Shown here in pieces: positions 2,571-49,022 of a stretch of 49,022 bases of DNA. Position 1 is the first letter of the stretch, and each line of letters starts with the position of its first letter. Location: the NCBI GenBank assembly GCA_025786725.1, contig JAHLTZ010000074.1:1-49022 (forward strand), read 5' to 3'. The translations under genes were made by a program, and so were the position numbers. The notes beneath the pieces are model-generated. The model worked only from the letters and a program-made list of their open reading frames with translations, was not told where the DNA came from and did no database searches. This DNA comes from Syncephalis fuscata S228 (Eukaryota > Fungi > Zoopagomycota).

Positions 2571-5500
2571 GTTAAGTAAAAAGTTAAGTAATAATTACCT
2601 AAAATGTAAGGGTATCCCTTGCCATTTTGACAATGAAATATAAATCAAAAGCTAATCAAAAGTTAATTAAAAGTTAATTAACTAGTTAATAATCAGTTAT
2701 CTAAAAATGTAAGGGGTACTCTTTGCCATTTTGATAATAAAATATAAAATAAAAAGTTAATTAAAAATGTATTAACTAGCTAATATTAATCCAGTTAATA
2801 ATTAATTAATAGGTGGTTTTTCAGCTTTATCTGAGAAGTCAGTTGCTAAAAATTTGCATTGCAGATTGGACAAATAAAATAAAAGTTAATTAGCTAGCTA
2901 ATAATATTTTATTTAATTTAGTTAATAGTTAATAGATTAATTAGTTAATTAGTTAATTAGTTAGTTAATGGTGGTTGTTGTTTAATACTTAATTATTCTA
3001 GTCAATTAATAGTGATTGCCGTTTAATACTTGTCAATTGGTTAACTAGTTAATAGCGATTGTTGTCTAGCACTAGTAATTAATTAACCTAGTTAATAAAT
3101 AGTAATGGCCAGCTAAGATTAGTCAATTACCTTTAGTTAACAATAATTTGTTTAATATTAGCTAATAGTTAATTAATTAATAAAGTGGTTTTTCAGATCG
3201 ATCTGAAAAGTTAGTTGCTAAAAGTTTTGCTCTGTAGATTGGACAGATAAATAAAATATAATTAATTATTAATAATTGGTGTTTAATAATTAGTTAGCAA
3301 TAATTTATCTAATACTAGTAATTAATTAGTTATCAATAGTATATTTAATATTGGTTAATTGCCTAATTACCTAATAATGACAGTTGTTTAATAGTTAATT
3401 AATTATTCTAGTCAATAGTACTTGGTGTTTAATACTTGTTAATTAGCTAACTAGTTAATAATAATTGTTGTTTAATAATTAATCAATTAATTTAGTTAAT
3501 TAGTAATGATTGCTATTCAATACTTGTCAACTAGTTTAGCTAAGAGTAATAGCCAGCTAACATTGGTCAATCAACTAGTTAGTTAATAATTCGTTTGATA
3601 GTTAATTAATCAGTCAATTGGTTAAATAATGTCACCGATATTATGGTTAGTGTATTGATGTTATTAATAATATATGATTGTGTATTAAAACATTGGTGCT
3701 AGGCGATGCACAAATGCTTAATAGTGTATATGCTGGATACATCCAAAAATAATGGTGCTAGCTATTGCATGATCATACCAACTGTGCCAATTGTTAACAT
3801 TGTGTGTACAATTGCATATCCATCAGCGGTAATATATTGCTGTATATTAGTTAATCATATTACTTGTTAAGACTAGCACCTATAAATGCTGTGTTAATGC
3901 ATTGACCATGCATGACACGCTAATGTCTAGTGACGCAAATGATACTAACATTAATGGCCAGTCGTGACTATGTCACGCCAATTAGCAGTCAGTGTGCCAG
4001 TGCTGTTGTTGGTCAATGCAATAGATCACTTATACGTAATTGCCAGCATAAATAGCATTGCATAGCAACCTGCAGCTTTAATGACATGATAAATACGTAG
4101 TACTATATTGCAAATTCTGCAACATCAGCTTCAGCAATTATGGCTAAACTGACTAATGACTATCTACATATTATTAAATACATTAATACAACTCATTTCC
4201 ATGTATAACATGTCGTGTAACTCTTGCAAATGATAGTAGAATTAAGTATACAATCATCATGGATAACAGCTGTTATATCATTAGTGGGCCTTGTAACATT
4301 AATTCATTAGCTAAATAAAAATAACGCTTACTAAGTGTATTGTATGGTTAATGTAGTGCACAATATGTACATCAGCAGCAATCATTGCTATACTACAGAC
4401 GCCAATGACTACAATACAACATTGCAATCAATCCATCATTGTAATATATATATAAACAAGCATAATGGCTACTGTTGTTAACACCATTAGTATATACAAT
4501 GTAGTCAATGCAATTGTCGCAGTTCCATGTAATGATACATCAGTAAATTGCTGTAACACTGGTGTTATTATTACAACGTATGGTCATTTGTGTGTATATA
4601 GCTGACTATACGTATGTGCAACTGGATCATCCATTGTTTAGTACAGTGGCCATTATGTTTGCTACATGTTGATGTATCATTATATAGTGTATAAATAACT
4701 GCGTATAGTTTGCAATGAGTTGATTAATAATATTAGGCCATTGTATGTTAATGGCTAGTACATATAACATTCATGAATTAAAGTACATTAACGTTGTTGA
4801 TGACGTTGGCGTTTATATTAGCGGCATGTATAGCACACAATACACTCGTACATGGCGATGTGCGCTGTTTATACCATGGCCATCGTATTGCTGTGTAGTA
4901 GTCACGCATTGATGCATTGTAAACAGCACATTAGTAGCATACAAGTTGCCATTATACATAGCTATAATATATGTAAAATGATTAACATATCAATACTAAC
5001 AATAGAAGGAATACATAAACAGCCTGTAAACAAACATTAATATTATAACAAAGTATGTGTATAATTGATTGCGCAGCTATATATTACGGTAATTTTTAAT
5101 ACAAAAATTGATGGCCATTGGCGCAGATAACGCTATATGTAATACTTAGTACATGCGTTAGTAGCTTAATACTGTCGTACGTATATTAGCACTAACTAAA
5201 AAGCCAGAAACTATACTAGCATACTATCGGCTGTAATAATGCATCAATCAGCTATACGTGTACCGATACTAATTGCCACATTGATCAGTCGTGCCATTGA
5301 TCAGTGAACAACAACATACTGTGGCTAATTACGGCCAATAGTTGTAGCTGTATAGCAGCAACAATCATCGGTAACGTTAACAACGAAATCAGCTGTAAAA
5401 TATGTGATTATTAGTCGATATTAATTAGTGGTATTGCGATAGAGTCATAATGACACCAATCAGTATTGGATAGCAGTATTGATATCGCAATGTATATGTT

Positions 5501-7000
5501 CGACATCAACCAACTGTTAAATAACAGATATACTGGCATATGTATTGTCAATGTGCTAATCACTACTGATGGTTTTATCTGGTTAGTCAATAGCTATTAG
5601 TACACATATCATTATGCATGACCAGCAATTACTGACTATTATAACTGATAAAAATGGCAAAAATGCTTGTTACAATTATTTTGCTTGATCCACGGTTTTA
5701 CAATAGTCAATATTACTATTACCAATCAACAATAGCAGTATATATAGATATACAGCAATTATATTACCGAAGCTGATTGTTGATAGTTGCTATTGTGCAT
5801 GTAATTGCTAATAAAACATTGCCATTTCTGATTAAAACTATTGGCTGCTTAATAGTAGCTAACATACATCTGGTTAGTAGCATTGTATTAATTTATTTGT
5901 GCGTAAATAAATGTCGTACTACTTGCCAGCTGGTTAATAAACCAGCTAATATAGCATTGATGGAATGTCATATATCACTAGTAACTAGTGGCTGTATATA
6001 ACATATAGCAACATGTGGCGTTGACGTGCACAAAACGTAATTGGGCATATATTAGCAATAGCCATTAATATATTATTGATTATTTGTATGCATATCATAG
6101 CATTGTTATTATAACTTATAAGTTTTGCAAACAACCACCAGTTTATGTCTTTAATAAGCTTATTGATAGATGAAGACAAACAAAATGCACCAAGTGTTTA
6201 TGTTATTTGTAGATATGCTGCAAATCGACAAATATTAATAACAGCTTCGCTATTTCTGTTACTAAATATTATTAATAACTGGTTTACTATTTTCAGCGAT
6301 CAGTATTAGTATGCATATTTACATTATCAATCAACAATACAGCAACAATAACGTCAATTACGGCATTTATTAAACAGCATGTCATTTTTGTCATCGATAT
6401 AGATAGTAACTTTTTGTTAATTCTTAGCTGTTGCACTGAAATATACGACATTATTTTATAGTGATACTAAGTTGTATAAATATAAAATTTTAACTATTAG
6501 TATCAGTAGCTGTGTTATGCTGATGGCGCACGCAGTATATTTAGCTCTAGCTACTGGCCAGTAATCAGTAATATACGATAAACAGATAGTGCTAATGTAA
6601 TCATGTAATTAATTGATGGCAATGTCGCAGATTAATTAACCTATAACAAGCCGCTATCGATATCGTACTTTATTTGATTAATAGACAATCGATTAATATA
6701 ATGAGGACTATTAAACTGGAAAAATATTGGTAATGTATTAATGCTAATTCGTAATTAGTAGTATATTTGCTTGACAAAGCGCCAATATACCATCATATTA
6801 GTTATTGTTAAGCGGCTAATACGACTAGCTAACTTGTATACTTGAATACTATTTAACCCACTGTTTAATATTGTTCTTCAATATTTAGGTAAATATTATT
6901 AGCATAGCATTGTCAATTAAGTAGTGTTGTCTGTTATAGCAACCAGCAACAGTATTGAGCGCTATTATAGCCCATTAACTATATAGTTTTCTATACATTA
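2190..7000 (+). repeat. Repeat family R, copy 1 (terminal module + TTAATTAG-rich segment S ~2570-3625 + degenerate segment D from ~3660); inner end approximate
   Basis: 3000-3610 is nearly identical to the reverse complement of 33546-34170. 3670-5100 and ~5850-6000 align more loosely with copies 2-4, e.g. GTGTGCCAGTGCTGTTGTTGGTCAATGCAATA at ~3992 and ~36346, and CTACTTGCCAGCTGG at ~5919 and ~37698. Confidence 0.85.
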
Positions 7001-30059: not shown

Positions 30060-33000
30060 TGTGTTAAAAGCTATATTGAATAAAACATAATCAATGTATG
30101 ATAAGATGGTATATATTGGTATGAATATGTCATAAGAATAATTCGTATAAATAGTGGATATATGCATACTGGATAATAATCTACAATGATGAGTATTTAA
30201 TAGCTGATTCACATACCGTCTAGTTTCATGTTCAATATAACGAGTGCCATTTCAATCACGCAAATGTTATCAATTGTAGCCATCTAATCACTCAATCACA
30301 TCATAGTCTGCTGATAAGTTGCTTACTATTAATACAATAGCTTAATACGCATATTCAATTAAATAAACCAATGATGTTTCTGTTTAAATAAATGATGCAG
30401 CGTGTACCTATATAATGCAGCTGCTTATAATACGCTAATAATTTAATACAACTCATTAATTGAGTGCCATGCTATATTTGCTGTCTATTATATTGCTTGA
30501 TTTGCCAGTTAGCATAGTAATGGTATCAGTACTATTAGCAGTAATCGACAGTTGTATATGATAGCTTGTTGATACATCAATTGGCATAAAGTCAAATAAA
30601 CATACACATTATTGTAATCATGAAATACATAAGCCACTGCATGCTGAGTAGTGATCAGTATTAACAGCACCAATTGCTTTGCATAAAATACACAGCAATA
30701 CTACCATATATCTATTAGTCCAACATCACCAGCATGTTTTACTAGCTGTGGTCACAGTAGCATATTAATACACATCGACGTCTATTCGGCGCATCATATT
30801 GTCAATTGTAGCAATGCGACAGCCATCACTAGTGTAATCGTCGACACCACAATATACAGTCTGTGCTACATTGCTAAACACATATATGTACACAGCAATA
30901 ATACACAGCAATAATATTATTGGTAATGACTAGTAAAAAACACGGCTATAGTCAATTTGCTTAGCATACAGCATACAATATACGCTGTATTATTAAGCAT
31001 CGTAAATTGATACGCAGCAACACACAAATGTTAATTGCGCTTAAATTACATGCCAATAGCTATATTCCACCAATGCAATTAATACGCCAGCTATAATACC
31101 GACAACGTCAAACAACATAGCCAAATAATGGATACTACTAAAATAATATATACAACATCTAACAATAGCTAATTGGCTAATACTATTTAATATCAATAGT
31201 CATTGTCATACAAATCTACAACTAGCTATTTATTAATAGTTGATTACACAATGCCAGTATTAGTTTATGCAGTCATAATTGATTGTTGATAATTGCTGCC
31301 AATTTGCTAATTATATTAATCAACAGACATTATAGCCAATGCACCATTCAATAATATGTTGACATTTGGTATTATATATAAATATTGTGTGTGCACAATA
31401 GCACAATAATATACATTGCTAGACTGTCGTCTACATATGCTATGAATGGTGTGATACCTGTAGATGTTGGTTTGTTTATTGGTATTACTGATGGCTTGTA
31501 TTAAACATAACTAATGCTATTGGTATGCCATGTAGTTATGCGACATAAATGTTGGTTACCATACAGCTACTAACAATTATTAATGATGGCATTGATAGCG
31601 TCAATATGCGTTAATATAAAGTTAACAGCATCTGTGATTACATACCACACGGCACCTATTATAAGCAATAACGTGCTTGCGTTTATGTCAATAGCGGCCA
31701 CTGTAAGCTATTGACCATTCTGATACTATATGGTTGCATATAGCATATACAACTACTCGTTATTAATTGCTAGAAATGCGCAGTGTGCCATTATCTGCAT
31801 GTTAGTCAACAAGCTATAGCAATAGCATTGTATTAGCTGGTTCATTAGCCAGCTGGCAAGTAGTTTAGTATCCATTTACACATTTGTACGTTGCTGCAAT
31901 GCTAATATACACTGTATATTATTTATATAAATTGCCAATGTTATTAGCTATAAAATACAATACTTTACTAACAACTATGCACAATATTAACTGACAATTA
32001 ATTACGGTAATGTAATTGCTATTATTAATTGCTAATAGCTGATTACACACTATAGCATGTGTAGTAATAACTGCCACTTACCAGCTAGTATAGCTGCTGG
32101 CTTGTCAGATGTTGCTGATGCCGCACTATACCATTAGACTGTTGATACACTTGAACAATACATATGATGTCATCTGTACTAATGGTCGTCTATATTTGTA
32201 TTGACAGTAGTTGCAGTATATAGTACTGCATAATCAATTATACATGCACGTTGCTGCATTCCGTCAATTGCTAGTACAATACGTTAATTATTTTACATAT
32301 ATTGCAGGTAGATATAGTGGCAGCTTGTATGTTGTTAATGTGTTATTTACAATGCAGTAATGCAGTGACCACTATATAGTATTACAATGGCCATGATATG
32401 CAAAACACACACTGACATGTACCAGCTATATATTGTGTATCATACACGACGATAACACAAATACTAGCATTGACAACTATATTGATATGATTTAATTTAT
32501 TGAAGCTATATATATTGGCTATTGACATTCAATAGTACATTAATGTGTAGCAAGCATAGTCGCCATTGTGTCAGTTCATTTATAATTGAGTTGCACATAT
32601 TCATGGCTTTATTTACATATACAAATAACGATACGTTGCAATAATCACCCAGTATTACAGCCGTCTATTGACATAGCGTATACATGTAACTGTAGCAGTT
32701 ACACTGACCACATCGCATATACTACTGATATTAACAGCAGTAGTCATGATAGTAATTGGTATGTATTTTACAATGCTGCATTAATTGCAATGCCGAATTG
32801 TAAGCATTATCGTTTATAGTATGGCGATTGGTGCTGCTGATTTACGTACTATGCACTACACTAACCATGCAATACGCTTAGTGGCTGTTTTTGTGCAACT
32901 AACTTATCGGTGCTACAAAGCACGCTGGCAATATAGCAGCTGTTACCCATGATGATTGTATATTTAATTCTACTATTATTTATGTATTACACGACATGCT

Positions 33001-34487
33001 ATGCATGGAATGAGTTGTATTAATGTGTTTGATAATATGTAGACAAACAGCAACCAGTTTATACATAATTGCTGAAGCTGGTGTTACAGCGTTCGCAATA
33101 TATTACTACGTATTCACCATGTCGTTAAAGCTGCAGGCCGTTGTGCAATGCTATTTGTACTAACACATTACGTATAAGTAACGTATTACATTGACCAACA
33201 ACAGCACTGGCACACCAACTGCCAATTGACGTGGCATGCTCACGACTGGCCATTGATGTTAGTGCCAGTTATGTTACTAGACATTAGCATGCCATACATG
33301 GTCAATGTATCAACACAACATGTATAGATACAGCACTAACAAGTAACATGGTTAATTAATATACAGTAATATATACCCGCTGATGAATATGCAAGTGTAC
33401 ACACGATGTTAGCAGTTGATACAGTTGCTATAATTATACAATAACTAGCACCATTATTTTTGAATGTGTTCAGCATATATACTACCAAGCACTTGTGTAT
33501 CGTCTAGCACCAATGTTGTAATACACAATCATACACTTTTAATATTATTAATTAACTATCAAACGAATTATTAACTAACTAGTTGATTGACCAATGTTAG
33601 CTGGCTATTACTCTTAGCTAAACTAGTTGACAAGTATTGAATAGCAATCATTACTAATTAACTAAATTAATTGATTAATTATTAAACAACAATTATTATT
33701 AACTAGTTAGCTAATTAACAAGTATTAAACACCAAGTACTATTAACTGACTAGAATAATTAATTAACTATTAAACAACTGTCATTATTAGGTAATTAGGT
33801 AATTAACTAATATTAAATATACTATTGATAGCTAATTAATTACTAGTATTAGATAAATTATTGCTAACTAATTATTAAACACCAATTATTAATAATTAAT
33901 TATATTTTATTTATCTGTCCAATCTACAGAGCAAAACTTTTAGCAACTAACTTTTCAGATCGATCTGAAAAACCACTTTATTAATTAATTAACTATTAGC
34001 TAATATTAAACAAATTATTGTTAACTAAAGGTAATTGACTAATCTTAGCTGGCCATTACTATTTATTAACTAGGTTAATTAATTACTAGTGCTAGACAAC
34101 AATCGCTATTAACTAGTTAACCAATTGACAAGTATTAAACGGCAATCACTATTAATCGACTAGAATAATTGATTAATTAACCAACTAATTAACTAGTATT
34201 AAGTGCACTATTAACATCAACTATTACCTGAATTACTATTAGCTGGTTATTAATATTAATTAACTAATATTAAATAAATTATTAACTAACTATTAACTGG
34301 ATTACTATTAATTAATACATTTTAATTTTTAGTTTATATTTTATTATCAAATGGCAAAGGGTATTTTTTACATTTTTAACTAATTATTACTTAACTTTTA
34401 CTTAACTTCTAGTCTATATTCTATGATTAAAATGGCAAAGAGCACCCTTTACATTTTCAGATAATTATTAATTGACTTTCAATTAAT
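30060..34487 (-). repeat. Repeat family R, copy 2 (reverse orientation)
   Basis: ~30200-33430 is a near-identical reverse complement of ~36130-39360. 33546-34170 is a near-identical reverse complement of 3000-3610. 34320-34470 carries the AAATGTAAGGGTA..TTGCCATTTTG motif also seen at 2600-2735. Confidence 0.92.
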
Positions 34488-35468
34488 AATCCAGCTAAGA
34501 CACCACCCGGAGTTAGCACAAACACTACTTACCAGTACAAAAGTGGAGCTAACTACAAGAGAGGGGGGTAAGGCCGGAAAAAAACACGAGTAAGGAAGAG
34601 TATTAAATCGAAATGAAAAGAGAAGAGTTTGCGCTAGAAATCGCAGCCGGTATACTGCCAACTCTAGAAAAGCAAAATAAGTGGTGTAGGGAGAGATATA
34701 GAACTAATATGTGCTGCAGATGTAGTAGTGGAGAAATAGAGACGTGTTGACATATAGTAAAGTGTGAAGGAAACGGACTAGATAGGAAAAAGAAGCAAGA
34801 GATAAAGCTAAAGACATGACAAGAAGAAAGGTGGAGTGGATAAATGAAAGAAGATTGAGAAAAGACCCGCCAATGAGACTGTTAAATGTGGGGGAGTGGC
34901 TGAATCTATCGCCCCAGATCAGCCAATCAGCAACACCGGACTCCTATTGGGATTGGCGAGCCTACAAACACAATACATTATGAAAAGAGAGGGGATACGT
35001 GAAGAAGAAAGAAGAAAACTGATAAAAACAGCAACAAAAACAACATTGGACTTCGTATGGAAGAAGATATGGAACACAAGATGCAAGCAAGTGGACAAAG
35101 CAATAGGAAGATGAAAAACAGCACGTACCGACACACAAGTAACAGCTCAACCAGAACCACAAGAAGGTCTGGCAACAAACGTCGAAGGCCAGAACGGCCC
35201 AAGGCAAATTTATACCTGGACCACATCAATAAAATGGCGCTCAATGTCGAACGTTACTTAAAGATGGTGGCCCCGCGTGGAGTCTATAGGACCCGGTTCC
35301 ATGCAAAAACGTGGCGGTCCGCTCGGTGTCAACAATGCTACATTGTTTAATATTTTAAAAGCTTTATTATGATTAACGTAATGACAGCATGACACTGAGA
35401 AGCAGCACAAACTCCTTAATTATGCGCAGCGGGGGCCCACAAGCTTTTCAAAATAAAAATCCAGCTAA
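34488..35468 (+). mobile_element. 5'-truncated, decayed non-LTR retrotransposon (L1/Tad-like ORF2 3' end) with an 11-bp TSD
   Basis: AATCCAGCTAA at 34488-34498 and 35458-35468. The frame from 34622 reads ILPTLEKQNKWCRERYRTNMCCRCSSGEIETC*HIVKC (zf-RVT CCHC), and later VWKKIWNTRC. A-rich 3' tail. Confidence 0.85.
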
Positions 35469-38400
35469 TAGTTAATAGTTAATTAGTTAATAATAATTTG
35501 TTTAATATTAGTTAATTAGTTGGTTAACTAATAAATAATGATTGATGTTTAATAATTAGCTAATTGATAATGATTGATGTTTGGTAGTTAATAATAATGG
35601 TTGCTGTTTAATACTGTTAGTTAGTTAATTAGTCAATAGCGATGGTTGTTTAATCTTAGTTAATTAGTTAGTCTAGTTAATTAATGGTAATAGCCAGCTA
35701 ATATTAGTTAATCAACTAGTTAGTTAATGATCAGTTAATTGGTTTAGTTAGTTAATAACGATTGTTTAACAGCTAATCAATTAGTTAATAATGGCTGCTA
35801 TTTAATACTCGTCAATTAGTTTAACTATAACTATCGTTGTCTAACACTAGTTAATTAACCGATGTAGTTGATTAATAATAGTAGCTAATTGTATCAGTCA
35901 ATCAGCTAGCTAGTTAATTAATGATGATTACTGGTTAACAATTAATTAATTATTTAAGCAGTGAACAATAATTTGTTTAATAATTAATTAGTCAATTGGT
36001 TAATAATAATTGTTGTTTATAATTAGTTAATTAACTAATAATGCTGTGTCTAACAATTAGTTTGCTAATTAATTATTAATGATCACTACTCCATTTGCTA
36101 TAATGGTGCTGTTAGCTATTGCATGATCATAGCAACTGTATCAACTGCTAATATCGTGTGTACACTTGCATATTCATCAGCGGGTATATATTACTGTATA
36201 TTAATTAACCATGTTACTTGTTAGTGCTGTATCTATACATGTTGTGTTGATACATTGACCATGTATGGCATGCTAATGTCTAGTAACATAACTGGCACTA
36301 ACATCAATGGCCAGTCGTGAGCATGCCACGTCAATTGGCAGTTGGTGTGCCAGTGCTGTTGTTGGTCAATGCAATACGTTACTTATACGTGGGTGTCAGT
36401 ATGAATAGCATTGCACAACGGCCTGCAGCTTTAACGACATGGTGAATACGTAGTAATATATTGCGAACGCTGTAACACCAGCTTCAGCAATTATGTATAA
36501 ACTGGTTACTGATTGTCTACATATTATCAAACACATTAATACAACTCATTCCGTGCATAGCATGTCGTGTAATACATAAATAATAGTAGAATTAAGTATA
36601 CAATCATCATGGGTAACAGCTGCTATATTGCCAGCGTGCTTTGTAGCACCGATAAGTTAGTTGCACAAAAACAGTCACTAAGCGTATTGCATGGTTAGTG
36701 TAGTGCATAGTACGTAAATCAGCAGCACCAATCGCCATACTATAAACGATAATGCTTACAATTCGGCATTGCAATTAATGCAGCATTGTAAAATACATAC
36801 CAATTACTATCATGACTACTGCTGTTAATATCAGTAGTATATGCGATGTGGTCAGTGTAACTGCTACAGTTACATGTATACGCTATGTCAATAGACGGCT
36901 GTAATACTGGGTGATTATTGCAACGTATCGTTATTTGTATATGTAAATAAAGCCATGAATATGTGCAACTCAATTATAAATGAACTGACACAATGGCGAC
37001 TATGCTTGCTACACATTAATGTACTATTGAATGTCAATAGCCAATATATATAGCTTCAATAAATTAAATCATATCAATATAGTTGTCAATGCTAGTATTT
37101 GTGTTATCGTCGTGTATGATACACAATATATAGCTGGTACATGTCAGTGTGTGTTTTGCATATCATGGCCATTGTAATACTATATAGTGGTCACTGCATT
37201 ACTGCATTGTAAATAACACATTAACAACATACAAGCTGCCACTATATCTACCTGCAATATATGTAAAATAATTAACGTATTGCTACTAGCAATTGACGGA
37301 CTGCAGCAACGTGCATGTATAATTGATTATGCAGTACTATATACTGCAACTACTGTCAATACAAATATAGACGACCATTAGTACAGATGACATCATATGT
37401 ATTGTTCAAGTGTATCAATAGTCTAATGGTATAGTGCGGCATCAGCAACATCTGACAAGCCAGCAGCTATACTAGCTGGTAAGTGGCAGTTATTACTACA
37501 CATGCTATAGTGTGTAATCAGCTATTAGCAATTAATAATAGCAATTACATTACCGTAATTAATTGTCAGTTAATATTGTGCATAGTTGTTAGTAAAGTAT
37601 TGTATTTTATAGCTAATAACACTGCCAATTTATATAAATAATATACAGTTGTATATTAGCATTATAGCAACGTACAAATGTGTAAATGGATACTAAACTA
37701 CTTGCCAGCTGGCTAATGAACCAGCTAATACAATGCTATTGCTATAGCTTGTTGACTAACATGCATATATGGCACACTGCGCGTTTCTAGCAACTAATAA
37801 CGAGTAGCTGTATATGCTATATGCAACCATATAGTATCAGAATGTCAATAGCTTAAGTGGCCGCTATTGACATAAACGCAAGCACGTTATTGCTTATAAT
37901 AGGTGCCGTGTGGTATGTAATCACAGATGCTGTTAACTTTATATTAACGCATATTGACGCTATCAATGCCATCATTAATAATTGTTAGTAGCTGTATGGT
38001 AACCAACATTTATGTCGCATAACTACATGGCCTACCAATATATTAGTTATGTTTAATACAAGCCATCAGTAATACCAATAAACAAACCAACATCCACAGG
38101 TATCACACCATTCATAGCATATGTAGACAACAGTCTAGCAATGCATATTATTGTGCTATTGTGCACACACAATGTTTATATTAATACCAAATGTCAAATA
38201 TTATTGAATGGTGCATTGGCTATAATGTCTGTTGATTAATATAATTAGCAAATTGGCAGCAATTATCAACAATCAATTATGACTGCATAAACTAATACTG
38301 GCATTGTGTAATCAACTATTAATAAATAGCTAGTTGTAGTTTGCCAATGTTGACTTGTATGACAATGACTATCGATATTAAATAGTATTAGCCAATTAGC

Positions 38401-39560
38401 TATTGTTAGATGTCGTATATATTATTTTAGTAGTATCCATTATTTGGCTATGTTGTTTGACGTTGTCGGTATTATAGCTGGCGTATTAATTGCATTGGGG
38501 AATATAGCTATTGGCACGTAATTTAAGCGCAATTAACATTTGTGTGTTGCTGCGTATCAATTTACGATGCTTAATAATACAGCATATATTGTATGCTGTA
38601 TGCTAAGCAAATTGACTATAGTCGTGTTTCTTACTGGTCATTACCATAATATTATTGCTGTGTATTATTGGCTGTGTACATATATGTGTTTAGCAATGTA
38701 GCACAGACTGTATATTGTGGTGTCGACGATGACACTAGTGATGGCTGTCGCATTGCTACAATTGATATATGATGCGCCGAATTAGACTCGATGTGTATTA
38801 TATGCTACTGTAAGCACAGCTAGTAAAACATGCCGGTGATGTTGGACTAATAGACATATGGTAGTATTGCTGTGTATTTTATGCAAAGCAATTGGTGCTG
38901 TTAATACTGATCACTACTCAGCATGCAGTGCTTATGTATTTCATGATTACAATAATGTGTATGTTTATTTGACTTTATGCCAATTAATGTATCGACAAGC
39001 TATCATATACAACTGTCGATTACTGCTAATAGTACTGATACCATTACTATGCTAACTGGCAAATCAAGCAATATAATAGACAGCAAATATAGCATGGCAC
39101 TCAGTTACACGAGTTGTATTAAATTATTAGCGTATTATAATCGGCTGCATTATATAAATACACGCTGCATCATTTATTTAAACAGAAACACCATTGGTTT
39201 ATTTAATTGAATATGCGTATTAAGCTATTGTATTAATAGTAAGCAACTTGTCAGCAGACTATGATGTGATTGCGTGATTAGATGGCTACAATTGATAACA
39301 TTTGCGCCATTGAAATGGCACTCGTTATATTGAACATGAAACTAGACGGTAGGTGAATCAGTTATCAAATATTTACACTGTACATTTATTATTTATTATG
39401 CATATATCCACAGTTTAGATGGATCATTCCCATTCTATTCCACACTGGCATCTAGTGTATGACATGCTATACACATTTTTTATTATATGGTATAATGCAC
39501 CTTATTCATCCGATGTATTGATACATATGCACTGCAGCTTTAACAGCGTTGTTTATGCTT
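35461..39560 (+). repeat. Repeat family R, copy 3
   Basis: Inverted match to copy 2 (the same 77-aa spurious ORF appears at 32586+ and 36973-) and to copy 4 (35467-36500 vs 43680-44468). Confidence 0.92.
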
Positions 39561-41970
39561 TTCATTGTATATGTATTTATCATGTACCGTTATATGCTCG
39601 CATGACATTGCATATACAATCTGGGTTTATTTCAACGGTATTAACAGCATCCAGTTTGTTTTGCTTATTTACGCATTTGCTTATGTATATATGCTGTATA
39701 ACGGTGACGCCGCTAACCACACGCCTTTATTGTAAATCTATCTGGATACATAACATTGTACCATGTAATGACCTTGCTTTAGCTTTATTGGTTATAAAAC
39801 TGGACTTACTTGGCTTTTCTATTTGTTTATTTTTTATAATGCACTGTAGTGGTTATTGGCGCTTTATACGTAGATTCATTTTATTGTATGTTGTTTTACC
39901 TATAATGACTGCCGACACTATGCTCATTGACGCAACTCGCCTGCTTATCCGTTGTATTGTGTTGTATTTTGCTTAACTAGCTTCAATCTATGTTTTGTAT
40001 TGTTACTGCATTTCTTTCTCGTATTATATTTTGTATTATAGTACTGCTTGTATAGCTGGATGTATGCTTGTTAGTATTGCTACGTATGGCTTTATACATA
40101 TTTGCATAGCTGTTTATTTGTATGTATAAGTGGCTTTATACTTGAGGTTAGATGGTATTGGTATATTAGTCTGTGCAGTTGTACATTCGTATAGTTAATT
40201 GCAGTGTAGCATATAATGCCGTGTAATTAGTTGTATGGCTGTATATCCACATAACTGTCTAGCTGGTAGTATATCTGTACAATTGGCGATATAGCTGTGT
40301 AATTGTGTGTTAGCCTGCTTGGCTGCACATAGTTAGTATATTGGCCAAAGTAGCTATACAGACCTATAAGCATGGTTGTATGTTATATAGTGACCAATGC
40401 TCTATACTTTTATTTATGTTTTTTAACGCTGTATGTTTTACCATTTTGATAGTTGGTTGGTTTTGCTTTATGCATAACAGCAGTTTAGTTTGTTTTGGCT
40501 TTATTAGCAATACAGCTTGACCTGTTCTGCTTATCTGCACATTTGTTATACATATGTGCTGAATAACTTCAATATAAGCTATTATCACTTTGCATAGCAT
40601 ATTCGTTTAGTTTTATACTGTTTTAGTATTTAATAATTACGCAATATTTATTGCTATTGTTTTTAATACTAGATCTGGTATTAATATATGTCTGTTTATT
40701 TTGTTTTAAATAGTTACACATCCACTCGTGTGTGTATATGCGCAATATGTCCAACATAATCAATATTCACTTCACATTGCCTGTTCGTTTAATTCAGTCA
40801 TATTTTATTGTCTACTAAGTACGTGCTGTCTGAGACTGCAATTCCTTTGTTCTCAACTTATTAATTACAAATCTCAGCTTATTTCGCTTCATTATTTATT
40901 AGGCTATATGCACTGTGTAAATGCGCCACCGCCATTTATATACTTCACCTGTATGTTCGTCATATTGTATATTGTGTTATTACATAGTAAACACGCTTTA
41001 TTTGAACTATGCTTATTTAAAGCTTACTTTATTGGTTATGGCTTTGGCAGACCCTGCTTAGTCTGCTTATTGACTCATATACAATGCAGCTTCTACTTTA
41101 CTGTGCATACAAATGATTTTGATTGTCTGGTTTATTGTATATCATTTTGTTACTAGCAAACACGCATTATTAATTGCAGCTGTTCACTTGTCAGTAGCTT
41201 TATTTGCCGTCAATTCGTCAACTGCCACTCATTTCTATGTTTTTATTCGACATACTAAGTATAGCATTTACTTTATACTGCCAAACACGTGCAATTGGCA
41301 GCCTGCTATGCTATGTTGGCTGTATATTTTGTTGTAATAGACAAAAGTATTTGTTAATCAACTTAAATGTATTACTGTGTCATTGATATATTTGCAGTAA
41401 TGCTCTGCTGTGTGCTTGCATATATACTTGTAACACACAAGCATGTCCTGGCCTACTGTATATCGCATGGCTATTTATTGTCTTACAGATGCGATGTAGT
41501 ATACACACCATAGCAAGTACGCTTAGTATATGCTGCCGTTATTTATGCGATTGCAGTAATTACTGTTATTCAACGCACTATCCATTGCTACATAGCTTGT
41601 TGTTTATCACTAAAGTTTATTTCTACTGTGCAATCAAATCCATTTGCGTTTATAGACTTCTGGCCGTGCAGCAAACTATATCGTGTTATTACATACACCA
41701 CAGTCTATTGTATAAATATGCCATTACTATTGTTATACTATTTTATATACATTCTGCCTATTTACAGCCATTGTGTTGCTTTTACCATCTGTGTTGCCAA
41801 AGCGTACGTTTATACACTATGATAGCAAATAAACAACCGATTTGCTATAAGCATTAAATGTACACGATGTAGCCCAATATGCATGTTAAATACGATTAAC
41901 AGTTACAGCCTGAGTTACAACTTAATGGTAGTGTATACAACACAGTTAATTAACAACGTGACATAAAGTA
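39560..41970. other. Gene-free, T-rich (+ strand) central core between R copies 3 and 4
   Basis: Only short C/Y/I/L/F-rich ORFs with no recognisable domain. No close second copy in the window. Confidence 0.55.
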
Positions 41971-41974
41971 CGCG

Positions 41975-44468
41975 GCAATACTACCATATGTCTATTAGTC
42001 CAACATCACTGGCGTGGTTACTAGCTGTGCTTAACAGTAGCATATTAATACGCAGCAATGTCTATTCGGCGCATCATATTGTCAATTATACAGTTTCAGC
42101 GTTGGTTCATGTAGCCATGACTGATCGTTAATAACTGCTGTCAATTTGCCAGCTATATCATTCGGCAAACATAATTGCCAATGCACTATTAACTGATATA
42201 TGTATTAACTATTTATATTACTTATAAGCACCGTGTGTGAACAATAGCACACTAGTACGTATTAATAGACTTCCGACCGCATACGCTATGAATGGTGCGT
42301 ATCAAACATAGCTAATATCATTGGGATCTGTGTGCTTACGTAGTATGGCTACTGACTACTATACAGCTACCGACGGCCACCAATGATGGCATTGATCGTA
42401 TTAGTAGCCGTCGATATATTGTACAATTGGTAGCATTTGTGATTACGTGCCATGCCGCAATCGTATACGATAGCGTAGTTGAATATACCGATAACGGTCT
42501 AGTAGTATCTAATCAGTTGCGCTAATATCATACGCAACTGTATACTATATAGTTACTGGTGACTAGAAATGCATAGCGTGTTAGCATACACATGGTAGGC
42601 AACAGGACATGCCATTATCATTGTATCAAATAGGTTATTAACCAGCTGGCAATCAGTGTAATATGTGTTTATACAGCTGCTGGCTTGTCAGATGTCGCTG
42701 ATGGCCGCACTATGCCATTAGACTGTTGATACACTTGAACAACACATATGATGCCATCTGTACTAATAGTCATCCATATTTGTATTGACATCCATGCTGC
42801 AGTAATTGCTAGCAGCAATATATTAATTATTTTACATATATTGCAGGTAGATATAGTGGCAGCTTGTATGTCACCAATGCGCTGTTTACAATGCAGTAAT
42901 GCAGCGACTGCTACATAGTAATACAATGACCATGGCATGCAAAACACATGCTGACATGTACCAGCTATATTTCGTGTAGCATACACGGCGACAATACAAA
43001 TACTAGCATTGGCAACTATATCGATATGCTTTAATCTATTGAGGCTGTATATACTGGCTATTGACATTCAATAGTACAGTATTACCAGTTGACATACTAC
43101 AAACAATATGCAGCTATTGATACATTATATAATAGTACATTGCTGTGTAGCAAGCATAGCCGCCATTGTGCCAGTTTTTATAATTGAGTTGCACATACTT
43201 ATGGTTTATTTACATATACAAATAACCATACGCTGCAATAATCACCCAGTATTACAACCGTTTACTGACATAGCGTATACATGTAACTGTAGCAGTTACA
43301 CTGACCACATCGCATATACTACTGATATTAACAGCAGTAGCCATGATAGTAATTGATATGTATTTTACAATGCTGCATTAATTGCAATGCCGAATTGTAA
43401 GCATTATCGTTTATAGTATGGCGATTGGCGCTGCTAATTTACGTACTATGCACTACCAACATGCATACGTTAGTGGCTGTTTTATGCAACTAACTTATCA
43501 TGCTACAAAGCAGTTGGCAACATAGCAGCTGTTACCCATAATGATTGTATATTTGATTTACTATCGTTTGTGTATTACACGACATGCTATGCACGGAATG
43601 CGTTGTATTAATGTGTTTGCTAATATATAGACAATCATTAACCAGTTTATACATAATTGCTGAAGCTGGTGTTACAGCGTTCGCAATATATCACTACGTA
43701 TTCACCATGTCGTTAAAGCTGCAGGCCGTTGTGCAATGCTATTCATACTGGCACACCACGTATAAGTAACGTATTGCATTGACCAACAACAGCACTGGCA
43801 CACCAACTGCCAATTGACGTGCCATGATCACGACTGGCCATTGATGTTAGTGTCAGTTATGTTACTAGACATTAGCATGCCATACACGGTCGATGTATCA
43901 ACACAACATGTATAGATGCAGCACTAACAAGCAGTATGGCTGATTAATATACAGCAATATATACCCGCTGATGAACATGCAAGTGTACACACAATATTAA
44001 CGGTTGACACAGCTGCTATGATCATGCAATAGCTAACAGTACCATTATAGGCAAATGGGAGTAGTGATCATTAATAATTAATTAGCAAACTAGTTGTTAG
44101 ACACAGCATTATTAGTTAATTAACTAATCATAAGCAAAATCATTATTAACTAATTGACGAGTATTAAATAGCAGCCATTATTAACTAATTAATTATTAAA
44201 CAACAGCCATTATTAGCTAATTGATTAACTGTTAAACAACAATCGCTATTAACTTAATTAACTAAACTAATTAACTGATCATTAACTAACTAGTTGATTG
44301 ACTAATATTAGCTGGCTATTACTATTGCTTTGACTAATTAACTAATTGACAAGTATTAAACACCAAGCATTATTAACTAACTAACTTAAACATCAATCAT
44401 TATTTATTAATTAACTAGCTATTAACTACTATCAAATAAATTATTATTGACTAATTAATTAACTATTA
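41975..44468 (-). repeat. Repeat family R, copy 4 (internally deleted; interrupted by the DIRS element and resuming at 48974-49022)
   Basis: GCAATACTACCATAT.TCTATTAGTCCAACATCAC at ~41975 matches ~30696. 42672-44030 is colinear with 32090-33440. After the DIRS element the sequence resumes ACTGGATTATTAATT...TAGTCTATATTCTAT, as at 34297-34425. Confidence 0.88.
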
Positions 44469-44633
44469 TTGCCTGTTGACAAAACTTTTTATTCTCGAAA
44501 TGTAGGTGATGTTACTAATTGCACTTAAATGGATATTAGGCTACTAGGGCCAAAGAGGAAAGAAAGGTAGAAATAAAGGAGAAAAGTTTCAGAACGTTCC
44601 AAACAACAGGCACCAGGGTCAGTGGCTGGGTGG

Positions 44634-44765
44634 GTGGAGGGACGAAGCAACTTAAAATAAAGGAGAAAAGTAGTGGAATCCGATGAATTGGATTCCTCGG
44701 CTTCCTTTATAGTTGTTTTGTCCCGACAATAAAGCGCTATTTAAAATTTTTAAATAGCCGCATTA
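44634..44765 (-). repeat. DIRS direct repeat A2 (132 bp)
   Basis: GTGGAGGGACGAAGC...AAATAGCCGCATTA, identical by eye to 48842-48973. Confidence 0.95.
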
Positions 44766-47657
44766 TTGCCTTATGTCTGGAGTAGACTGTTGCATGAAAT
44801 CAAACAGGGCAAAGTCGAAAGGTTGGGCTACATACTCCATTCGTATGTACCTTTGCATTGACGTCAAACTCGACCATATGCCTTGATACATTATCTTCGC
44901 GCTGCTGATACCAATGCTGTGGGTGGCGGACGCAAACGTGCGTCGTACGCTATGCGATGTTAATGTCTTAACCACCGCTGCTGGGGCACCCGCAGTCTTC
45001 ATTACCCGTTGTAATACTTGCGTGACGGTATAATGGCTCTGAAATATAGCCTTTTCAGTAAAAGGCGGGCTCCATATTGTTTCTGTATTACTACTAATAA
45101 ATTGTGTTGATTCCAAATAACGTCTGATGAGTGGTCCAACTATTGTGCGTGTTAAATCGATTGCAAGAATACGTCCTGCCTCATGCTTATGTCGTTTCGC
45201 GCCGTTAATTGTGATGGTAAGCATTGTATTCGTTACTTGTAAATCGGTCTTTTCTATCTTGAGTAGAGAAGAGGCACGCAGGCCGCATAACACGCCTATC
45301 AGAATGATGTTTAAGTCGCGTAATGCCACCTCGTCGGTCAACAAGCCATCATTCGATACGTAAGGAGCCAACCAGGAGGAAGGAAAAAATGAATTACTTT
45401 TTGATACGGTTGGATTTTCAGCAAAAGTCCAAGCTGCGTACCCTTTGGATAATTGTGTGAGTAGTGTTGATTCAACTTCAGGGAAGCCGAGGTGATTATT
45501 AATTGATCGTAACGCCGACATCCGTGCTTGTATAGTTGCAGGTGCCAACGCGCGTAAACTGGATGCGGCCATATAAACGGCCATCGCACCAATTTTTAGT
45601 GGAAAAGGGTGTTGCCCATACTCACGACAGAAACGCGCGTAACTGGAAACGTGGGAGCTATAAGTATTCCACGACGCTTCCGTATATTGTTTGTCGAGTA
45701 ATTGGAACAAACGCTGTTGTTGTTCTGGATCTAAATTGACGGGCAACTGTAGTTGCTCCGCCCAGGCGCGTGATAGCTGCGTGCGCAAATACGAGCTCCG
45801 TCCATGCGCGCCACCAAGATCTTCCAACTCGGATTGATCGCCGGTTCTGGAATGACGTCCGACCTTGTCATTACATTCGCCCAAACCCGAACGGAATCTA
45901 CTGGCAACACGGCGGTTGTTATCAACTGCACGAGAGGCCACCACGGCTGGCTGGTCCAACGAGGCAAGATGACGGTAGCTTGCGCGCGATCTCGTATTAA
46001 CTTGGTTAAGATTACGCCCATAAGGCCGAAAGGGGGATTGATAAAATTGTTTTCTCCCCGCCACGTAACCGACAGGGCATCTACCCCCTCGCACCCATCG
46101 TCTGCGTTGAGTGAATTGTAACGCGGTAGCAATGCGTTCCAGCCCGCCGCGAAACGATCTATGGTATGAGGGCCGAATGCTTCTTCTATCTCTTGGAACA
46201 TAGGTGCCGGTAGTTGCCAATCGGACTTTTGGACGATTCGCGACAGGAAATCCGCCGCCACGTTGTATCGACCGGGTAAGTACTTGATTAGCCCCATCAA
46301 ATGTATTTCTTCTTGCTGACAGAGATTCCAAACCCGACGAACGATCGCGTGCAAAGAAGCGCTGGACGAGGCGAAAGCATTGAGCGCGCCGAGAGAAGCT
46401 TGGGCGTCCATCATGGCCTGCACCACCGATTGACGAATGATCGTCTGGAAGTTTTTTACTGCGTATAGCAATCCCAACGCCTCTCTGTGCACTATGTGCA
46501 ACTCTTTCTCTTCCGCCCCCCACTGTCCGTAAGCCAATCTCTCTTCTCCTTGCCCGTCCACGATTGTTGCCCCCCATCCCTCGTCTGATGCATCCGTAGT
46601 AATAACGTAGTCGGGCGGACGCTGAATGATCGACGCGGCAGGCTGATTGCTCACGATTTTCAAAATTCGCCTCATCTCTCTGACGCTTGCATTGCTGACC
46701 TTGATCCGGGCTTGCCAATCCCCTCTCTTTTTCAGATCGTTGTATAATGCTCTTAGGTGCAACATTATATACGGGATTGCATGCCTCGCCGCGATCACCA
46801 CCCCCGTCACTTGCGCCACCTCCCGCGCCACCACCATCCTGGCTTTCTTCGCGCACATCTTTAAAACTCCTAGCAAGGTAAGCTTTATTTTCTCCCGATA
46901 TGAATCTGTCAGTTGAAATTCCATTGCGCGCAGATCTATACGGTAACCAAGATGATCTATTACCTGAGTCGGCTCCCACACACATTTCGTCGGATGTGGC
47001 TGTAATCCTAAACTTCTTAACAGCAATTGCGTCTTGAGCGGCCATTCCTGAGCCATTTGCACGTGATTGAGCAGAATCAGAAAGTCGTCTAGGTACGCCA
47101 GACAACGCAATCCTTGCTCGCGCAAATATTGCACCATGGGCCGCATTGTCTTGACGAAGAAATACGGGGACAGACTCCACCCGAACGGGAGGGATTGGTA
47201 CTGGTAATACCGACCTAGTATTTCCGTTTGAAAATACTTTTGCTGATTGGGACGTAGGCCCACCGCCAGATAACCATCCTTCAGATCGAAGGCTATGGCG
47301 CGGTCTTCCGGTTGAGCCAAGTACTTGAGCACTCTTAAGTCTTCGTAACGCATCGGCGATTCTGAACAGTGTTGGTTTAGATGTCGCAGGTCGATTATTA
47401 GGCGGTATCCCTGCGGCTTGCGAGGGATGATAAACGACGGCGACACGTGAATGGCTTGGCTGGCCGGGATTTCGATTATGGCACCGGCCTGCAATAATCG
47501 ATGAACTTCCTGCTGTAAGAACAGGACCTCCGCAGGATCGCGGGTCTGGTAGGATCGATAGCGGAACGGAGCAGGAGGCCCTTGCGCGCCCCATGGTACC
47601 GCTACGCCATGCCGGATCCACTTCATCACTCTTCGACTTGCCCCTATAGAATGCCAC
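44763..47657 (-). CDS. Tyrosine recombinase ORF (YR domain ~45760-44763; long N-terminal part overlaps pol in another frame)
   Basis: Core-binding helices (SWNTYSSHVSSYARFC...LAPATIQARMSAL) and catalytic residues GLRAS, GAKRHK, SHSVRR, GIWSSLTSMQRYIR. Confidence 0.92.
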   Translation of the reverse strand: MAFYRGKSKSDEVDPAWRSGTMGRARASCSVPLSILPDPRSCGGPVLTAGSSSIIAGRCHNRNPGQPSHSRVAVVYHPSQAAGIPPNNRPATSKPTLFRIADALRRLKSAQVLGSTGRPRHSLRSEGWLSGGGPTSQSAKVFSNGNTRSVLPVPIPPVRVESVPVFLRQDNAAHGAIFARARIALSGVPRRLSDSAQSRANGSGMAAQDAIAVKKFRITATSDEMCVGADSGNRSSWLPYRSARNGISTDRFISGENKAYLARSFKDVREESQDGGGAGGGASDGGGDRGEACNPVYNVAPKSIIQRSEKERGLASPDQGQQCKRQRDEANFENREQSACRVDHSASARLRYYYGCIRRGMGGNNRGRARRREIGLRTVGGGRERVAHSAQRGVGIAIRSKKLPDDHSSIGGAGHDGRPSFSRRAQCFRLVQRFFARDRSSGLESLSARRNTFDGANQVLTRSIQRGGGFPVANRPKVRLATTGTYVPRDRRSIRPSYHRSFRGGLERIATALQFTQRRRWVRGGRCPVGYVAGRKQFYQSPFRPYGRNLNQVNTRSRASYRHLASLDQPAVVASRAVDNNRRVASRFRSGLGECNDKVGRHSRTGDQSELEDLGGAHGRSSYLRTQLSRAWAEQLQLPVNLDPEQQQRLFQLLDKQYTEASWNTYSSHVSSYARFCREYGQHPFPLKIGAMAVYMAASSLRALAPATIQARMSALRSINNHLGFPEVESTLLTQLSKGYAAWTFAENPTVSKSNSFFPSSWLAPYVSNDGLLTDEVALRDLNIILIGVLCGLRASSLLKIEKTDLQVTNTMLTITINGAKRHKHEAGRILAIDLTRTIVGPLIRRYLESTQFISSNTETIWSPPFTEKAIFQSHYTVTQVLQRVMKTAGAPAAVVKTLTSHSVRRTFASATHSIGISSAKIMYQGIWSSLTSMQRYIRMEYVAQPFDFALFDFMQQSTPDIRQ

Positions 47658-47728
47658 CTTTTCCAGGCCGATCTTACACGTAAATGCAGGGGCTGATCGA
47701 CCGGAGGTGGCCGGTAGGATTCAGGCAT
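45731..47728 (-). CDS. Reverse transcriptase - RNase H - DNA N6-adenine methyltransferase-like polyprotein (first ATG 47728; frame open from 47809)
   Basis: RT: RLIIDLR, FDLKDGY, LPFGWSLSP, YLDD. RNase H: TTDASDEGWG, HREA, NVAADFLSR. MT: IDRFA...RYNS...DAL...W...INPPF...QPWWP. Confidence 0.95.
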   Translation of the reverse strand: MPESYRPPPVDQPLHLRVRSAWKRWHSIGASRRVMKWIRHGVAVPWGAQGPPAPFRYRSYQTRDPAEVLFLQQEVHRLLQAGAIIEIPASQAIHVSPSFIIPRKPQGYRLIIDLRHLNQHCSESPMRYEDLRVLKYLAQPEDRAIAFDLKDGYLAVGLRPNQQKYFQTEILGRYYQYQSLPFGWSLSPYFFVKTMRPMVQYLREQGLRCLAYLDDFLILLNHVQMAQEWPLKTQLLLRSLGLQPHPTKCVWEPTQVIDHLGYRIDLRAMEFQLTDSYREKIKLTLLGVLKMCAKKARMVVAREVAQVTGVVIAARHAIPYIMLHLRALYNDLKKRGDWQARIKVSNASVREMRRILKIVSNQPAASIIQRPPDYVITTDASDEGWGATIVDGQGEERLAYGQWGAEEKELHIVHREALGLLYAVKNFQTIIRQSVVQAMMDAQASLGALNAFASSSASLHAIVRRVWNLCQQEEIHLMGLIKYLPGRYNVAADFLSRIVQKSDWQLPAPMFQEIEEAFGPHTIDRFAAGWNALLPRYNSLNADDGCEGVDALSVTWRGENNFINPPFGLMGVILTKLIRDRAQATVILPRWTSQPWWPLVQLITTAVLPVDSVRVWANVMTRSDVIPEPAINPSWKILVARMDGARICARSYHAPGRSNYSCPSI

Positions 47729-48749
47729 TTCCGGCCCCGCCCGCCGGACCACCACCGCGCTGTGGCGGGGCGGATTTCTTGGGGTCGGTGGCCGTCGTGC
47801 CTTTACCAAGCTTGGTGGTGGAATGACTTAAACTTTTGAAAGTTTGCGCTGTCTCTGTCTTCCGTTTGGCCCGCAAAATCTCGGATTGGATGTTGCTGGT
47901 GTATCGGGTCATGCCAACCGTATCCATACGCGATTCCACCTGGCGGATGGCCTCATCACTCAATTCAGACCTGGCCCGGACCATTGAATAACGAGTTAAT
48001 ATAGTCCGTTCCAATACTTGCAACACGCAGGCTAACACCGTATACGCGGATGTACCCTCACGCATGTCCACATTCCACAATGACAAGGCTTGGATAGTCT
48101 TTACCAGGTAAAGCACCATGGATAACACAGCACGTCCTTCCCTTTGCCCTTCACCGGTAAGCTTGTTGAAGACGTCGTCTTGAATAGTGTTGAGATTTTG
48201 TGGTTTAGGATCCATGTAATTAACGATGGGAATAAAACCCACGAACGGCATGAATAAATCTTCCGTTTGGGCAAATTCAGAAGGCGATTCGTTAAAACGG
48301 GTTCCTCTAAGCAATAACTCCACGAAATCAGGTGAATTGGGATCCAACTCTTCCGGCAAATCCGTGTATTCAACATCCGTTCGCGCCACCCGGACCCGCG
48401 GATCCTCTCCTTCCGATTCCTCGTCTGGTTCCCTAGGGTCCCCGTCGTTTTGCGTCGAACGACCCGTACCAAGTCGTTTGGTGGCGATGATATGTCGCAT
48501 GCGATTCACGTCCTGCCGAGCAGTGGCGTTATGGCCGGATGCTTCGACCAGTTGATTTGCACCTGCCCTCGGCTCTTCCAACAGATGACCAGGCGTGTCA
48601 GTCTGATCATGGTCTTCAACGGGGCGGTTCGATCCGATCTTCATGGCTTGGGCAAGCTGGGTAACAATGGCAGCCAAATCCTCCTCGTGCAGGCGTACCA
48701 CTGATGACTCAGGTTCCTCTGAACCACTCTGGCTCTGATCTTCAGACAT
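47721..48749 (-). CDS. Gag-like ORF1 of the DIRS element
   Basis: First ORF downstream of A1, overlapping pol. Assigned by position; no zinc knuckle seen. Confidence 0.75.
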   Translation of the reverse strand: MSEDQSQSGSEEPESSVVRLHEEDLAAIVTQLAQAMKIGSNRPVEDHDQTDTPGHLLEEPRAGANQLVEASGHNATARQDVNRMRHIIATKRLGTGRSTQNDGDPREPDEESEGEDPRVRVARTDVEYTDLPEELDPNSPDFVELLLRGTRFNESPSEFAQTEDLFMPFVGFIPIVNYMDPKPQNLNTIQDDVFNKLTGEGQREGRAVLSMVLYLVKTIQALSLWNVDMREGTSAYTVLACVLQVLERTILTRYSMVRARSELSDEAIRQVESRMDTVGMTRYTSNIQSEILRAKRKTETAQTFKSLSHSTTKLGKGTTATDPKKSAPPQRGGGPAGGAGNA

Positions 48750-48841
48750 GTTTAAAGATAGTATATCTTATTTGTAAATAACAAGAATAAAAACCTTTGA
48801 CTTTGCTTAATCAAATATGAACGCTTTATTTTGAGTGCTTT

Positions 48842-48973
48842 GTGGAGGGACGAAGCAACTTAAAATAAAGGAGAAAAGTAGTGGAATCCGATGAATTGGA
48901 TTCCTCGGCTTCCTTTATAGTTGTTTTGTCCCGACAATAAAGCGCTATTTAAAATTTTTAAATAGCCGCATTA
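48842..48973 (-). repeat. DIRS direct repeat A1 (132 bp; element 5' end, with a TATAAA on the sense strand)
   Basis: Identical by eye to 44634-44765. Confidence 0.95.
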
Positions 48974-49022
48974 ACTGGATTATTAATTAACACAGTTTAA
49001 CTTATAGTCTATATTCTATTAT

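Follow-up and report, generated by a model that had tools for sequence, protein, structure and literature searches.

Two retroelements of unrelated kinds occupy the same 13 bases of a repeat-boundary motif in a 49,022-nucleotide stretch of the genome of the fungus Syncephalis fuscata S228 (contig JAHLTZ010000074.1), the whole of which is referred to here as the window. One is the 5′-truncated remnant of a long interspersed nuclear element (LINE). The other is an intact retrotransposon encoding a tyrosine recombinase which, on its predicted proteins and repeat structure, is filed in the DIRS order. An initial annotation of the window had pointed to the shared position and proposed that a landing pad defined by the host serves both elements. 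The shared position is confirmed. As to how it arose, we lean on balance towards two or three independent insertions, each obeying the short AT-rich target requirement of its own element, in a repeat zone that tolerates transposons.

Two insertions at one boundary motif

The motif lies where two repeats meet. T is a tandem, partly palindromic repeat with a 1.14-kb unit. S is low-complexity, AT-rich DNA of 0.4–0.9 kb with words such as TTAAT, TAACTA and ATTAG, and D is the more complex DNA found next after S. The ‘repeat R’ of the initial annotation corresponds to S plus D, and its ‘cassette’ to the interval between two T arrays. The border between T array and S DNA is marked by the 13-mer TAATCCAGYTAAT. 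Allowing one mismatch at most, this sequence occurs six times in the window against an expectation of 0.36, and six or more occurrences were seen in none of 100 shuffles. Four boundary copies are present: c1 at 2787 (+ strand), c2 at 34304 (− strand), c3 at 34487/35457 (+ strand) and c4 at 48982 (− strand). Once the inserts are removed the four can be aligned, and the LINE target duplication in c3 then corresponds to motif positions 2–12 and the DIRS core in c4, TAAT, to positions 10–13. Both insertions thus map to one 13-mer at the repeat junction, as had been claimed.

Two copies of the motif in the window are unoccupied. The first, c1 (TAATCCAGTTAAT; 2787–2799, + strand), follows a T array at 1–2786, delimited by repeat-family comparison and self-alignment and to which no strand is assigned, and is followed by S DNA at 2800–3660. 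The second had been placed at 34288–34304. The motif proper, c2, occupies 34292–34304 (− strand), with four flanking bases making up the remainder of that interval, and its S DNA lies at 33460–34291.

A LINE away from its usual target

The insertion at 34499–35457 is a genuine 5′-truncated LINE on the + strand. It is flanked by an exact 11-bp target-site duplication, AATCCAGCTAA, read directly at 34488–34498 and 35458–35468 (both + strand) just as initially described. The left copy represents positions 2–12 of c3, and the S DNA of c3 resumes after the right copy, at 35469–36100. The 959 bp of the insertion, which include a AAAATAAA tail, are 92% identical to the 3′ end of full-length copies of ~7.0–7.3 kb, and relatives at this level of identity continue upstream on contigs C2, C24, C177 and C135. 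Full-length copies encode ORF1, an apurinic/apyrimidinic endonuclease (APE), a reverse transcriptase (RT) and RNase H. In one of them, L050, Pfam matches were obtained to Exo_endo_phos (E = 1.2e-12), RVT_1 (E = 1.4e-22) and RNase_H (E = 1.6e-11). Assignment to the APE-type LINEs is made on the domains of this full-length relative, the window fragment comprising the 3′ 959 bp only. The tail of (AAAAT)n type, the variable 5′ truncation (copies begin at query positions 1, 158, 474 and 764) and the target duplications, of 11 bp in the window and 15–18 bp in other copies, are all LINE hallmarks.

Compared with a near-identical, active group of copies, the window LINE has 69 differences over 958 aligned bases, 87% of them transitions, in both directions. 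The same strain has yielded a 326-nt contig that agrees with the window copy over 239 nt but for a single mismatch and departs from the window at 34497; its remaining 87 nt are not those of the window's left flank. A near-identical longer LINE copy, or an alternative junction, may lie behind this contig.

Copies of both the element and the repeats were sought in the 29.4-Mb assembly (371 contigs). The LINE shares its last 60 bp with a tRNA-headed short interspersed nuclear element (SINE) of ~395 bp, and the pair has a preferred target. At 26 of 29 distinct LINE/SINE 3′ junctions the element is followed by the same sequence of an unrelated ~80-bp satellite, at (T)AATATACAATACCAC. The full-length LINEs on C2, C24 and C177 have 15–18-bp duplications of this satellite site, and (T)AATATACAATACCAC is duplicated by 15 of the 18 SINEs for which both flanks could be read. 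The exceptions to the satellite site are three, namely the window copy in c3 and two SINEs in unique DNA (L013 and L022), and all that these off-target sites have in common is that the duplication begins with (T)AAT. As nick context the canonical site has TCAAT^ or TCAGT^, and c3 has TTAAT^, as does a further insertion, on contig C311, which is considered below. Between the canonical target and the boundary motif only T^(T)AAT is shared. The boundary motif is the site of none of the other 28 junctions read, nor of any other copy among at least 45 matches.

The satellite has a second reading. On the opposite strand it takes the form ...TAG|NNN|GTAAGTGGTATTGTATATTA..., a pattern of introns with 3-nt exons between them (loci L002–L030, for example L026:2281–2963, L025 and L018). 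The LINE and SINE insert in antisense orientation at a point 4 nt into the intron from its 5′ splice site, with a duplication spanning intron positions +5 to +20, and a unit of ~80 bp thereby grows to ~500 bp. When 132 triplets from six loci are concatenated, one stop codon is found where ~10 would be expected from base composition. Judged from these sequence features, the LINE/SINE pair is predicted to target intron starts in arrays of 3-nt microexons.

A divergent DIRS-order element with a four-base core

The element in c4 extends from 44469 to 48973 on the − strand, 4505 bp counting one copy of the core. The S DNA of c4 (44036–44464, − strand) leads up to the insertion point, where the left flank ends ...AACT-ATTA, the ATTA at 44465–44468 (strand undefined) being either a crossover core or a 4-bp duplication. 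The right flank reads ATTA-ACTGGATT; its ATTA, at 48970–48973, is the + strand reading of TAAT, the last four bases of the c4 motif (48970–48982, − strand), beyond which T DNA continues to the contig end. The empty site is confirmed by two unoccupied paralogs, C201:370279 and C320:93704, in which ATTA is present once only, within ...AACT-ATTA-ACTGGATTATTAATT. The core and the empty site originally proposed for this element are therefore upheld.

Three open reading frames (ORFs) are found on the − strand, one gag-like (48749–47721), one for RT, RNase H and a Dam-like methyltransferase (47809–45731), and one for the recombinase, ending at 44763. Pfam matches were to RVT_1, RT_RNaseH, Dam and Phage_integrase; the same search returned no match to a DDE integrase or a protease. 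A 132-nt direct repeat is present at the 5′ end (48842–48973) and again 165 nt from the 3′ end (44634–44765), leaving a terminal segment of 165 nt at 44469–44633. At 44757–44774 the circle junction recurs internally as GCCGC-ATTA-TTGCCT, which equals the right end, the core and the left end joined, with a single ATTA. RT/RNase H accompanied by a tyrosine recombinase, and terminal repeats accompanied by an internal junction copy, are features of the DIRS order. Strict DIRS1-like elements have inverted terminal repeats and an internal complementary region. Here the long repeats are direct, and inverted matches within the element amount to short palindromes only. Because its layout is A...(B)A B and not one of inverted repeats, the element is, as far as structure can be read from sequence, a member of the DIRS order which is not strictly DIRS1-like.

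The likeness to DIRS-1 of Dictyostelium lies in the gag, RT/RNase H/Dam-like methyltransferase and recombinase ORFs and in the internal circle junction. In a published model the integration sites of DIRS elements are defined by a short circle-junction core, through recombination with an identical core in the target (PMC7192593), and the short core on both sides of the present element fits this model, framed there for a trinucleotide (PMC7192593). The elements differ in that here the terminal repeats (132 nt) are direct, the second repeat pair has nearly gone (~6 nt), and the four-nucleotide core, ATTA, is extended by ACT. In its A...(B)A B layout the element resembles those of PAT/Ngaro type (PMC3783388), except that only ~6 nt of B1 are left, and yet its methyltransferase domain is one assigned to DIRS. 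Its nearest protein relatives are ~34% identical, the best matches being unnamed.

Only three recombinase-bearing copies exist in the genome and they are 100% identical, so that the sample of targets is one of three: AACT-ATTA-ACTGG in the window, ATTA-ACTAAC on C201 and TTTAC-ATTA-ACTAAT on C34. The C201 copy lies in S DNA, 180 bp from an intact motif. The C34 copy lies inside a T array, with its cognate empty paralog 2 kb away at C34:9020–9034. In degraded remnants on C75 and C101 the left end likewise has ATTA. Neither of the two other intact copies occupies the boundary motif, and the common part of the targets is ATTA|ACT only. The recombinase appears, from this comparison of target sequences, to need ATTA|ACT and nothing more.

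Two of these copies have irregularities of their own. The C201 copy (L032; 365596–370100) has T array on its left and S DNA on its right, flanks which are not cognate, the natural continuation of this S DNA, seen in the window at ~44280, being a different one. The mismatch points either to sequence exchanged between DIRS copies that are identical or to a misjoin of the assembly through these identical 4.5 kb. The C34 copy (2483–6899), otherwise identical, is without ~79 bp (query 2414–2492), and its right junction contains an additional A (GCCGC-A-ATTA).

Whether the shared position might instead have been created by faulty assembly, or by copying from one repeat to another, was also considered. 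The identity of the three DIRS copies, their location at or near contig ends, the mismatched flanks on C201 and the contig that departs from the window at 34497 could all be taken in this sense. Joined together, however, the left and right flanks of each window insert exactly reproduce the empty site of the paralogs, an exact 11-bp duplication is not something a misjoin can produce, the two inserts are unrelated elements, and same-strain contigs carry the window LINE copy with 0–1 mismatches. An artefact is accordingly so improbable as to be almost negligible.

The motif as a dedicated target

The 13-mer itself might be a sequence-specific target of both elements, or of a host protein that recruits both. 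Two elements have, after all, inserted within the same 13 bp, and the 11 boundary copies known genome-wide agree well in the motif even though their S DNA falls to ~75% identity. The target sites described above speak strongly against such a role: other LINE and SINE copies are absent from the motif, the canonical LINE site resembles it only at T^(T)AAT, and the other DIRS copies share with it only ATTA|ACT. Eight of the 11 boundary copies are empty at the motif and three are occupied. Exact 13-mers outside T/S junctions number only three, all in unique DNA and all empty. Degenerate motif searches of the genome found nothing above control level beyond the 11 known boundary copies, and an extended 17-mer with 1–2 mismatches occurred at the level of its reversed-pattern control. 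A dedicated 13-mer target is very unlikely.

A census of the flanks of other copies had been set beforehand as the test that could refute the landing-pad idea, and it showed that both elements insert elsewhere. A host-defined pad common to the two is therefore not sustained, given the 26 of 29 LINE/SINE junctions in the satellite and the use of other ATTA|ACT sites by the other DIRS copies. The premise behind the idea, that the two elements should have no sequence specificity in common, also fails, since both use TAAT/ATTA. What survives, with modest support from the C311 insertion and from two breakpoints at the left edge of the motif, is the weaker notion of a local hot spot.

Independent insertions or a hot spot

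Under the explanation that we favour, the LINE would nick after ...TTAAT, and its (AAAAT)n RNA tail would pair with the exposed ...ATT(A)-3′ end and so prime reverse transcription, a microhomology that we infer. The window copy would be a rare off-target event of an element whose normal target is the fixed satellite site. The ATTA core of the DIRS circle junction would recombine with ATTA|ACT in the target through a putative 4-bp crossover. The boundary motif contains ATTAACT and has TTAATTAAT on both sides, so that both requirements would be available within ~25 bp, and the insertions would fall in a T array and flanking S zone which may be tolerant of transposons. Since the motif meets the requirements of both elements, the shared spot can be seen as a moderately unlikely coincidence that offers no evidence of a pad made by the host.

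Counts of candidate sites indicate how unlikely. Each S copy contains 14–17 ATTAACT, ~30 ARTTAAT and ~54–97 TAAT. The chance that a DIRS insertion within a T/S complex uses the motif is ~1/14 to 1/30, and the chance that at least one of three DIRS insertions in T/S DNA does so is ~0.1–0.15. For a LINE-type insertion the chance of overlapping the motif is 0.02–0.045 if any T^AAT/TAA site is allowed and 0.04–0.10 if TTAAT^ is preferred.

A third insertion enters the reckoning. At C311:150680–150774 (L077 and L083) a 59-bp insert lies exactly at the motif, with an 18-bp duplication of TAATTCAGTTAAYAGTTA. It ends in an (AAAAT)n-like run, (TTTAT)n-like on the other reading, and is oriented opposite to the window LINE. 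No other copy of its body was found in the genome. Derivation from the window LINE was considered and rejected, the body scoring at shuffle level (1382 of 2000 shuffles score as high or higher) and only the tail pattern matching. Because the body matches nothing else and is not significantly LINE-like, the insert is probably a retroposition of RNA from a source not matched in the genome. When 38.8 kb of T/S DNA were scanned for a tail together with a duplication, the C311 event alone was recovered, with none in the interiors of the repeats.

Several observations weigh against independent insertions. Three of the 11 boundary copies carry independent inserts, the LINE, the DIRS element and that on C311, which overlap the same 13–18 bp, and the only two LINE-type insertions detectable in ~39 kb of T/S DNA both fall on the motif. 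Its left edge is also the end point of two rearrangements. One is the collapse of a T array at c3: the two T subunits between c2 and c3 (34305–34486, + strand) are oriented correctly for c2 and wrongly for c3, and a rearrangement breakpoint must therefore lie at most 8 bp from where the c3 motif begins on the left. The other is a deletion on C325, where the motif has been lost between two GTTAATTAA repeats. Under the chance model the joint probability is ~1e-4 to 1e-3, before any post hoc correction.

These are the grounds for the alternative that the T/S boundary is a genuine hot spot of insertion and breakage, set by the host locus and used by mechanistically different elements, an explanation that we hold to be possible but doubtful. 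A cause might be sought in a centromere-like chromatin boundary, or in stalled replication or processing where the palindromic T array ends. It is in keeping with a hot spot that the three occupied copies hold three different inserts in different orientations, and that all three intact DIRS copies lie in or beside T/S complexes. The complexes, ~11 loci totalling ~50 kb, make up roughly 0.2% of the assembly and hold ~4% of the genome's ATTAACT sites, the latter a rough estimate extrapolated from densities and not a count. DIRS-1 is likewise confined in Dictyostelium, to centromeric safe sites (PMC7192593, PMC3783388), and for the copies confined here to a repeat zone targeting and survival are both possible.

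The hot spot nevertheless meets difficulties. The LINE-type inserts have clean duplications of 11 and 18 bp, as would be left by an endonuclease that the element itself supplies and not by capture at a break already present. The C201 DIRS copy inserted 180 bp from a motif that it did not disturb, and the body of the C311 insert is tied to no element. A hairpin or cruciform at the motif was rejected, the DNA folds of three motif copies being no better than those of shuffles (z −0.04 to −1.6), so that no significant single-strand structure is indicated. Occupation of 3 of 11 copies stands beside a per-event chance of 0.02–0.10, in a small sample and for a hypothesis framed post hoc. The LINE/DIRS pair prompted that hypothesis and cannot test it, and for this reason the C311 insertion alone is taken as a test. 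As the sole test independent of the formation of the hypothesis it gives p ~0.04–0.10 if a TTAAT^ preference is granted, from very small numbers. In its most explicit form the hot spot would lie where the palindromic T arrays end, with the string TTAATTAA-TAATYCAGYTAATAG-TTAATTAA, conserved at every T/S boundary, as its marker. This edge of the T array would be a fragile or accessible point determined by the host, possibly a centromere boundary, which captures inserts arriving by target-primed reverse transcription and by tyrosine recombination and which seeds rearrangements. We put this forward tentatively, as a less than even prospect.

Organisation of the T/S complexes

In the window T DNA is found at 1–2786, at 34305–34486 as a two-subunit remnant, and from 48983 to the contig end. 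Genome-wide there are ~10–11 T arrays of 1.6–6.4 kb, built of the 1.14-kb partly palindromic unit and mostly at contig ends (C344, C201, C320, C311, C334, C325, C34, C102, C24 and C173), with outward-facing S/D repeats flanking them. They may be centromere-like regions, an identity for which they are candidates.

The window also contains a ~9-kb palindrome whose arms (30154–34304 and 35457–39411) are 97% identical in D and of different types in S, c2 resembling c1 (98%) and c3 resembling c4 (75–81%). Because the S types differ between them, the arms would seem, from these identities, to be mosaic and not a simple inverted duplication. That the interval 35457–44468 is a transposon whose terminal inverted repeats end in the motif was considered and rejected, as none of its ORFs matches a transposase or recombinase, and the neighbouring unit between inverted repeats holds host genes. 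These, a PPR gene and a Hobbit-family gene of several exons found in a Pfam search of the window, identify the contig as eukaryotic DNA. No Rfam family reached threshold in the window.

Relation to known systems and significance

The LINE/SINE pair recalls the target-specific APE-type LINEs of the R1/TRAS/SART/Tx1 lineages and their partner SINEs. Common to them are ORF1, APE, RT and RNase H, target duplications of 11–18 bp, variable 5′ truncation, a tRNA-headed SINE sharing the last 60 bp, and the placement of most copies at one fixed position of a repeat. The present pair differs in that its preferred target is an ~80-bp satellite reading as an intron array, and in that the window copy lies off target in another repeat. 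Utopia, which inserts in U2 snRNA genes, is similar in behaviour only, since it encodes a restriction-like endonuclease (PMC4640811) and the LINE described here is of APE type. At a larger scale, unrelated elements pile up in AT-rich, gene-free repeats as they do in the transposon nests or safe havens of heterochromatic and centromeric repeats. Here, by contrast, the elements coincide on the scale of base pairs, in copies that are paralogous, and the T/S complexes are only candidates for a centromere.

If coincidence and target preference account for the shared position, it would be an instance of ordinary transposon pile-up in AT-rich repeats, and the analysis would serve mainly to annotate two things, a LINE/SINE pair that is new and a DIRS-order element that is divergent and has a clear 4-bp core. 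Should the boundary prove to be a true hot spot, integration directed by the structure of a locus and not by the specificity of an element could be studied there at a compact, sequence-defined place, with no more than 11 copies to follow. The more valuable lead is the insertion of the LINE and SINE 4 nt inside the 5′ splice site of introns in microexon arrays, which would link mobile elements to the growth of those genes.

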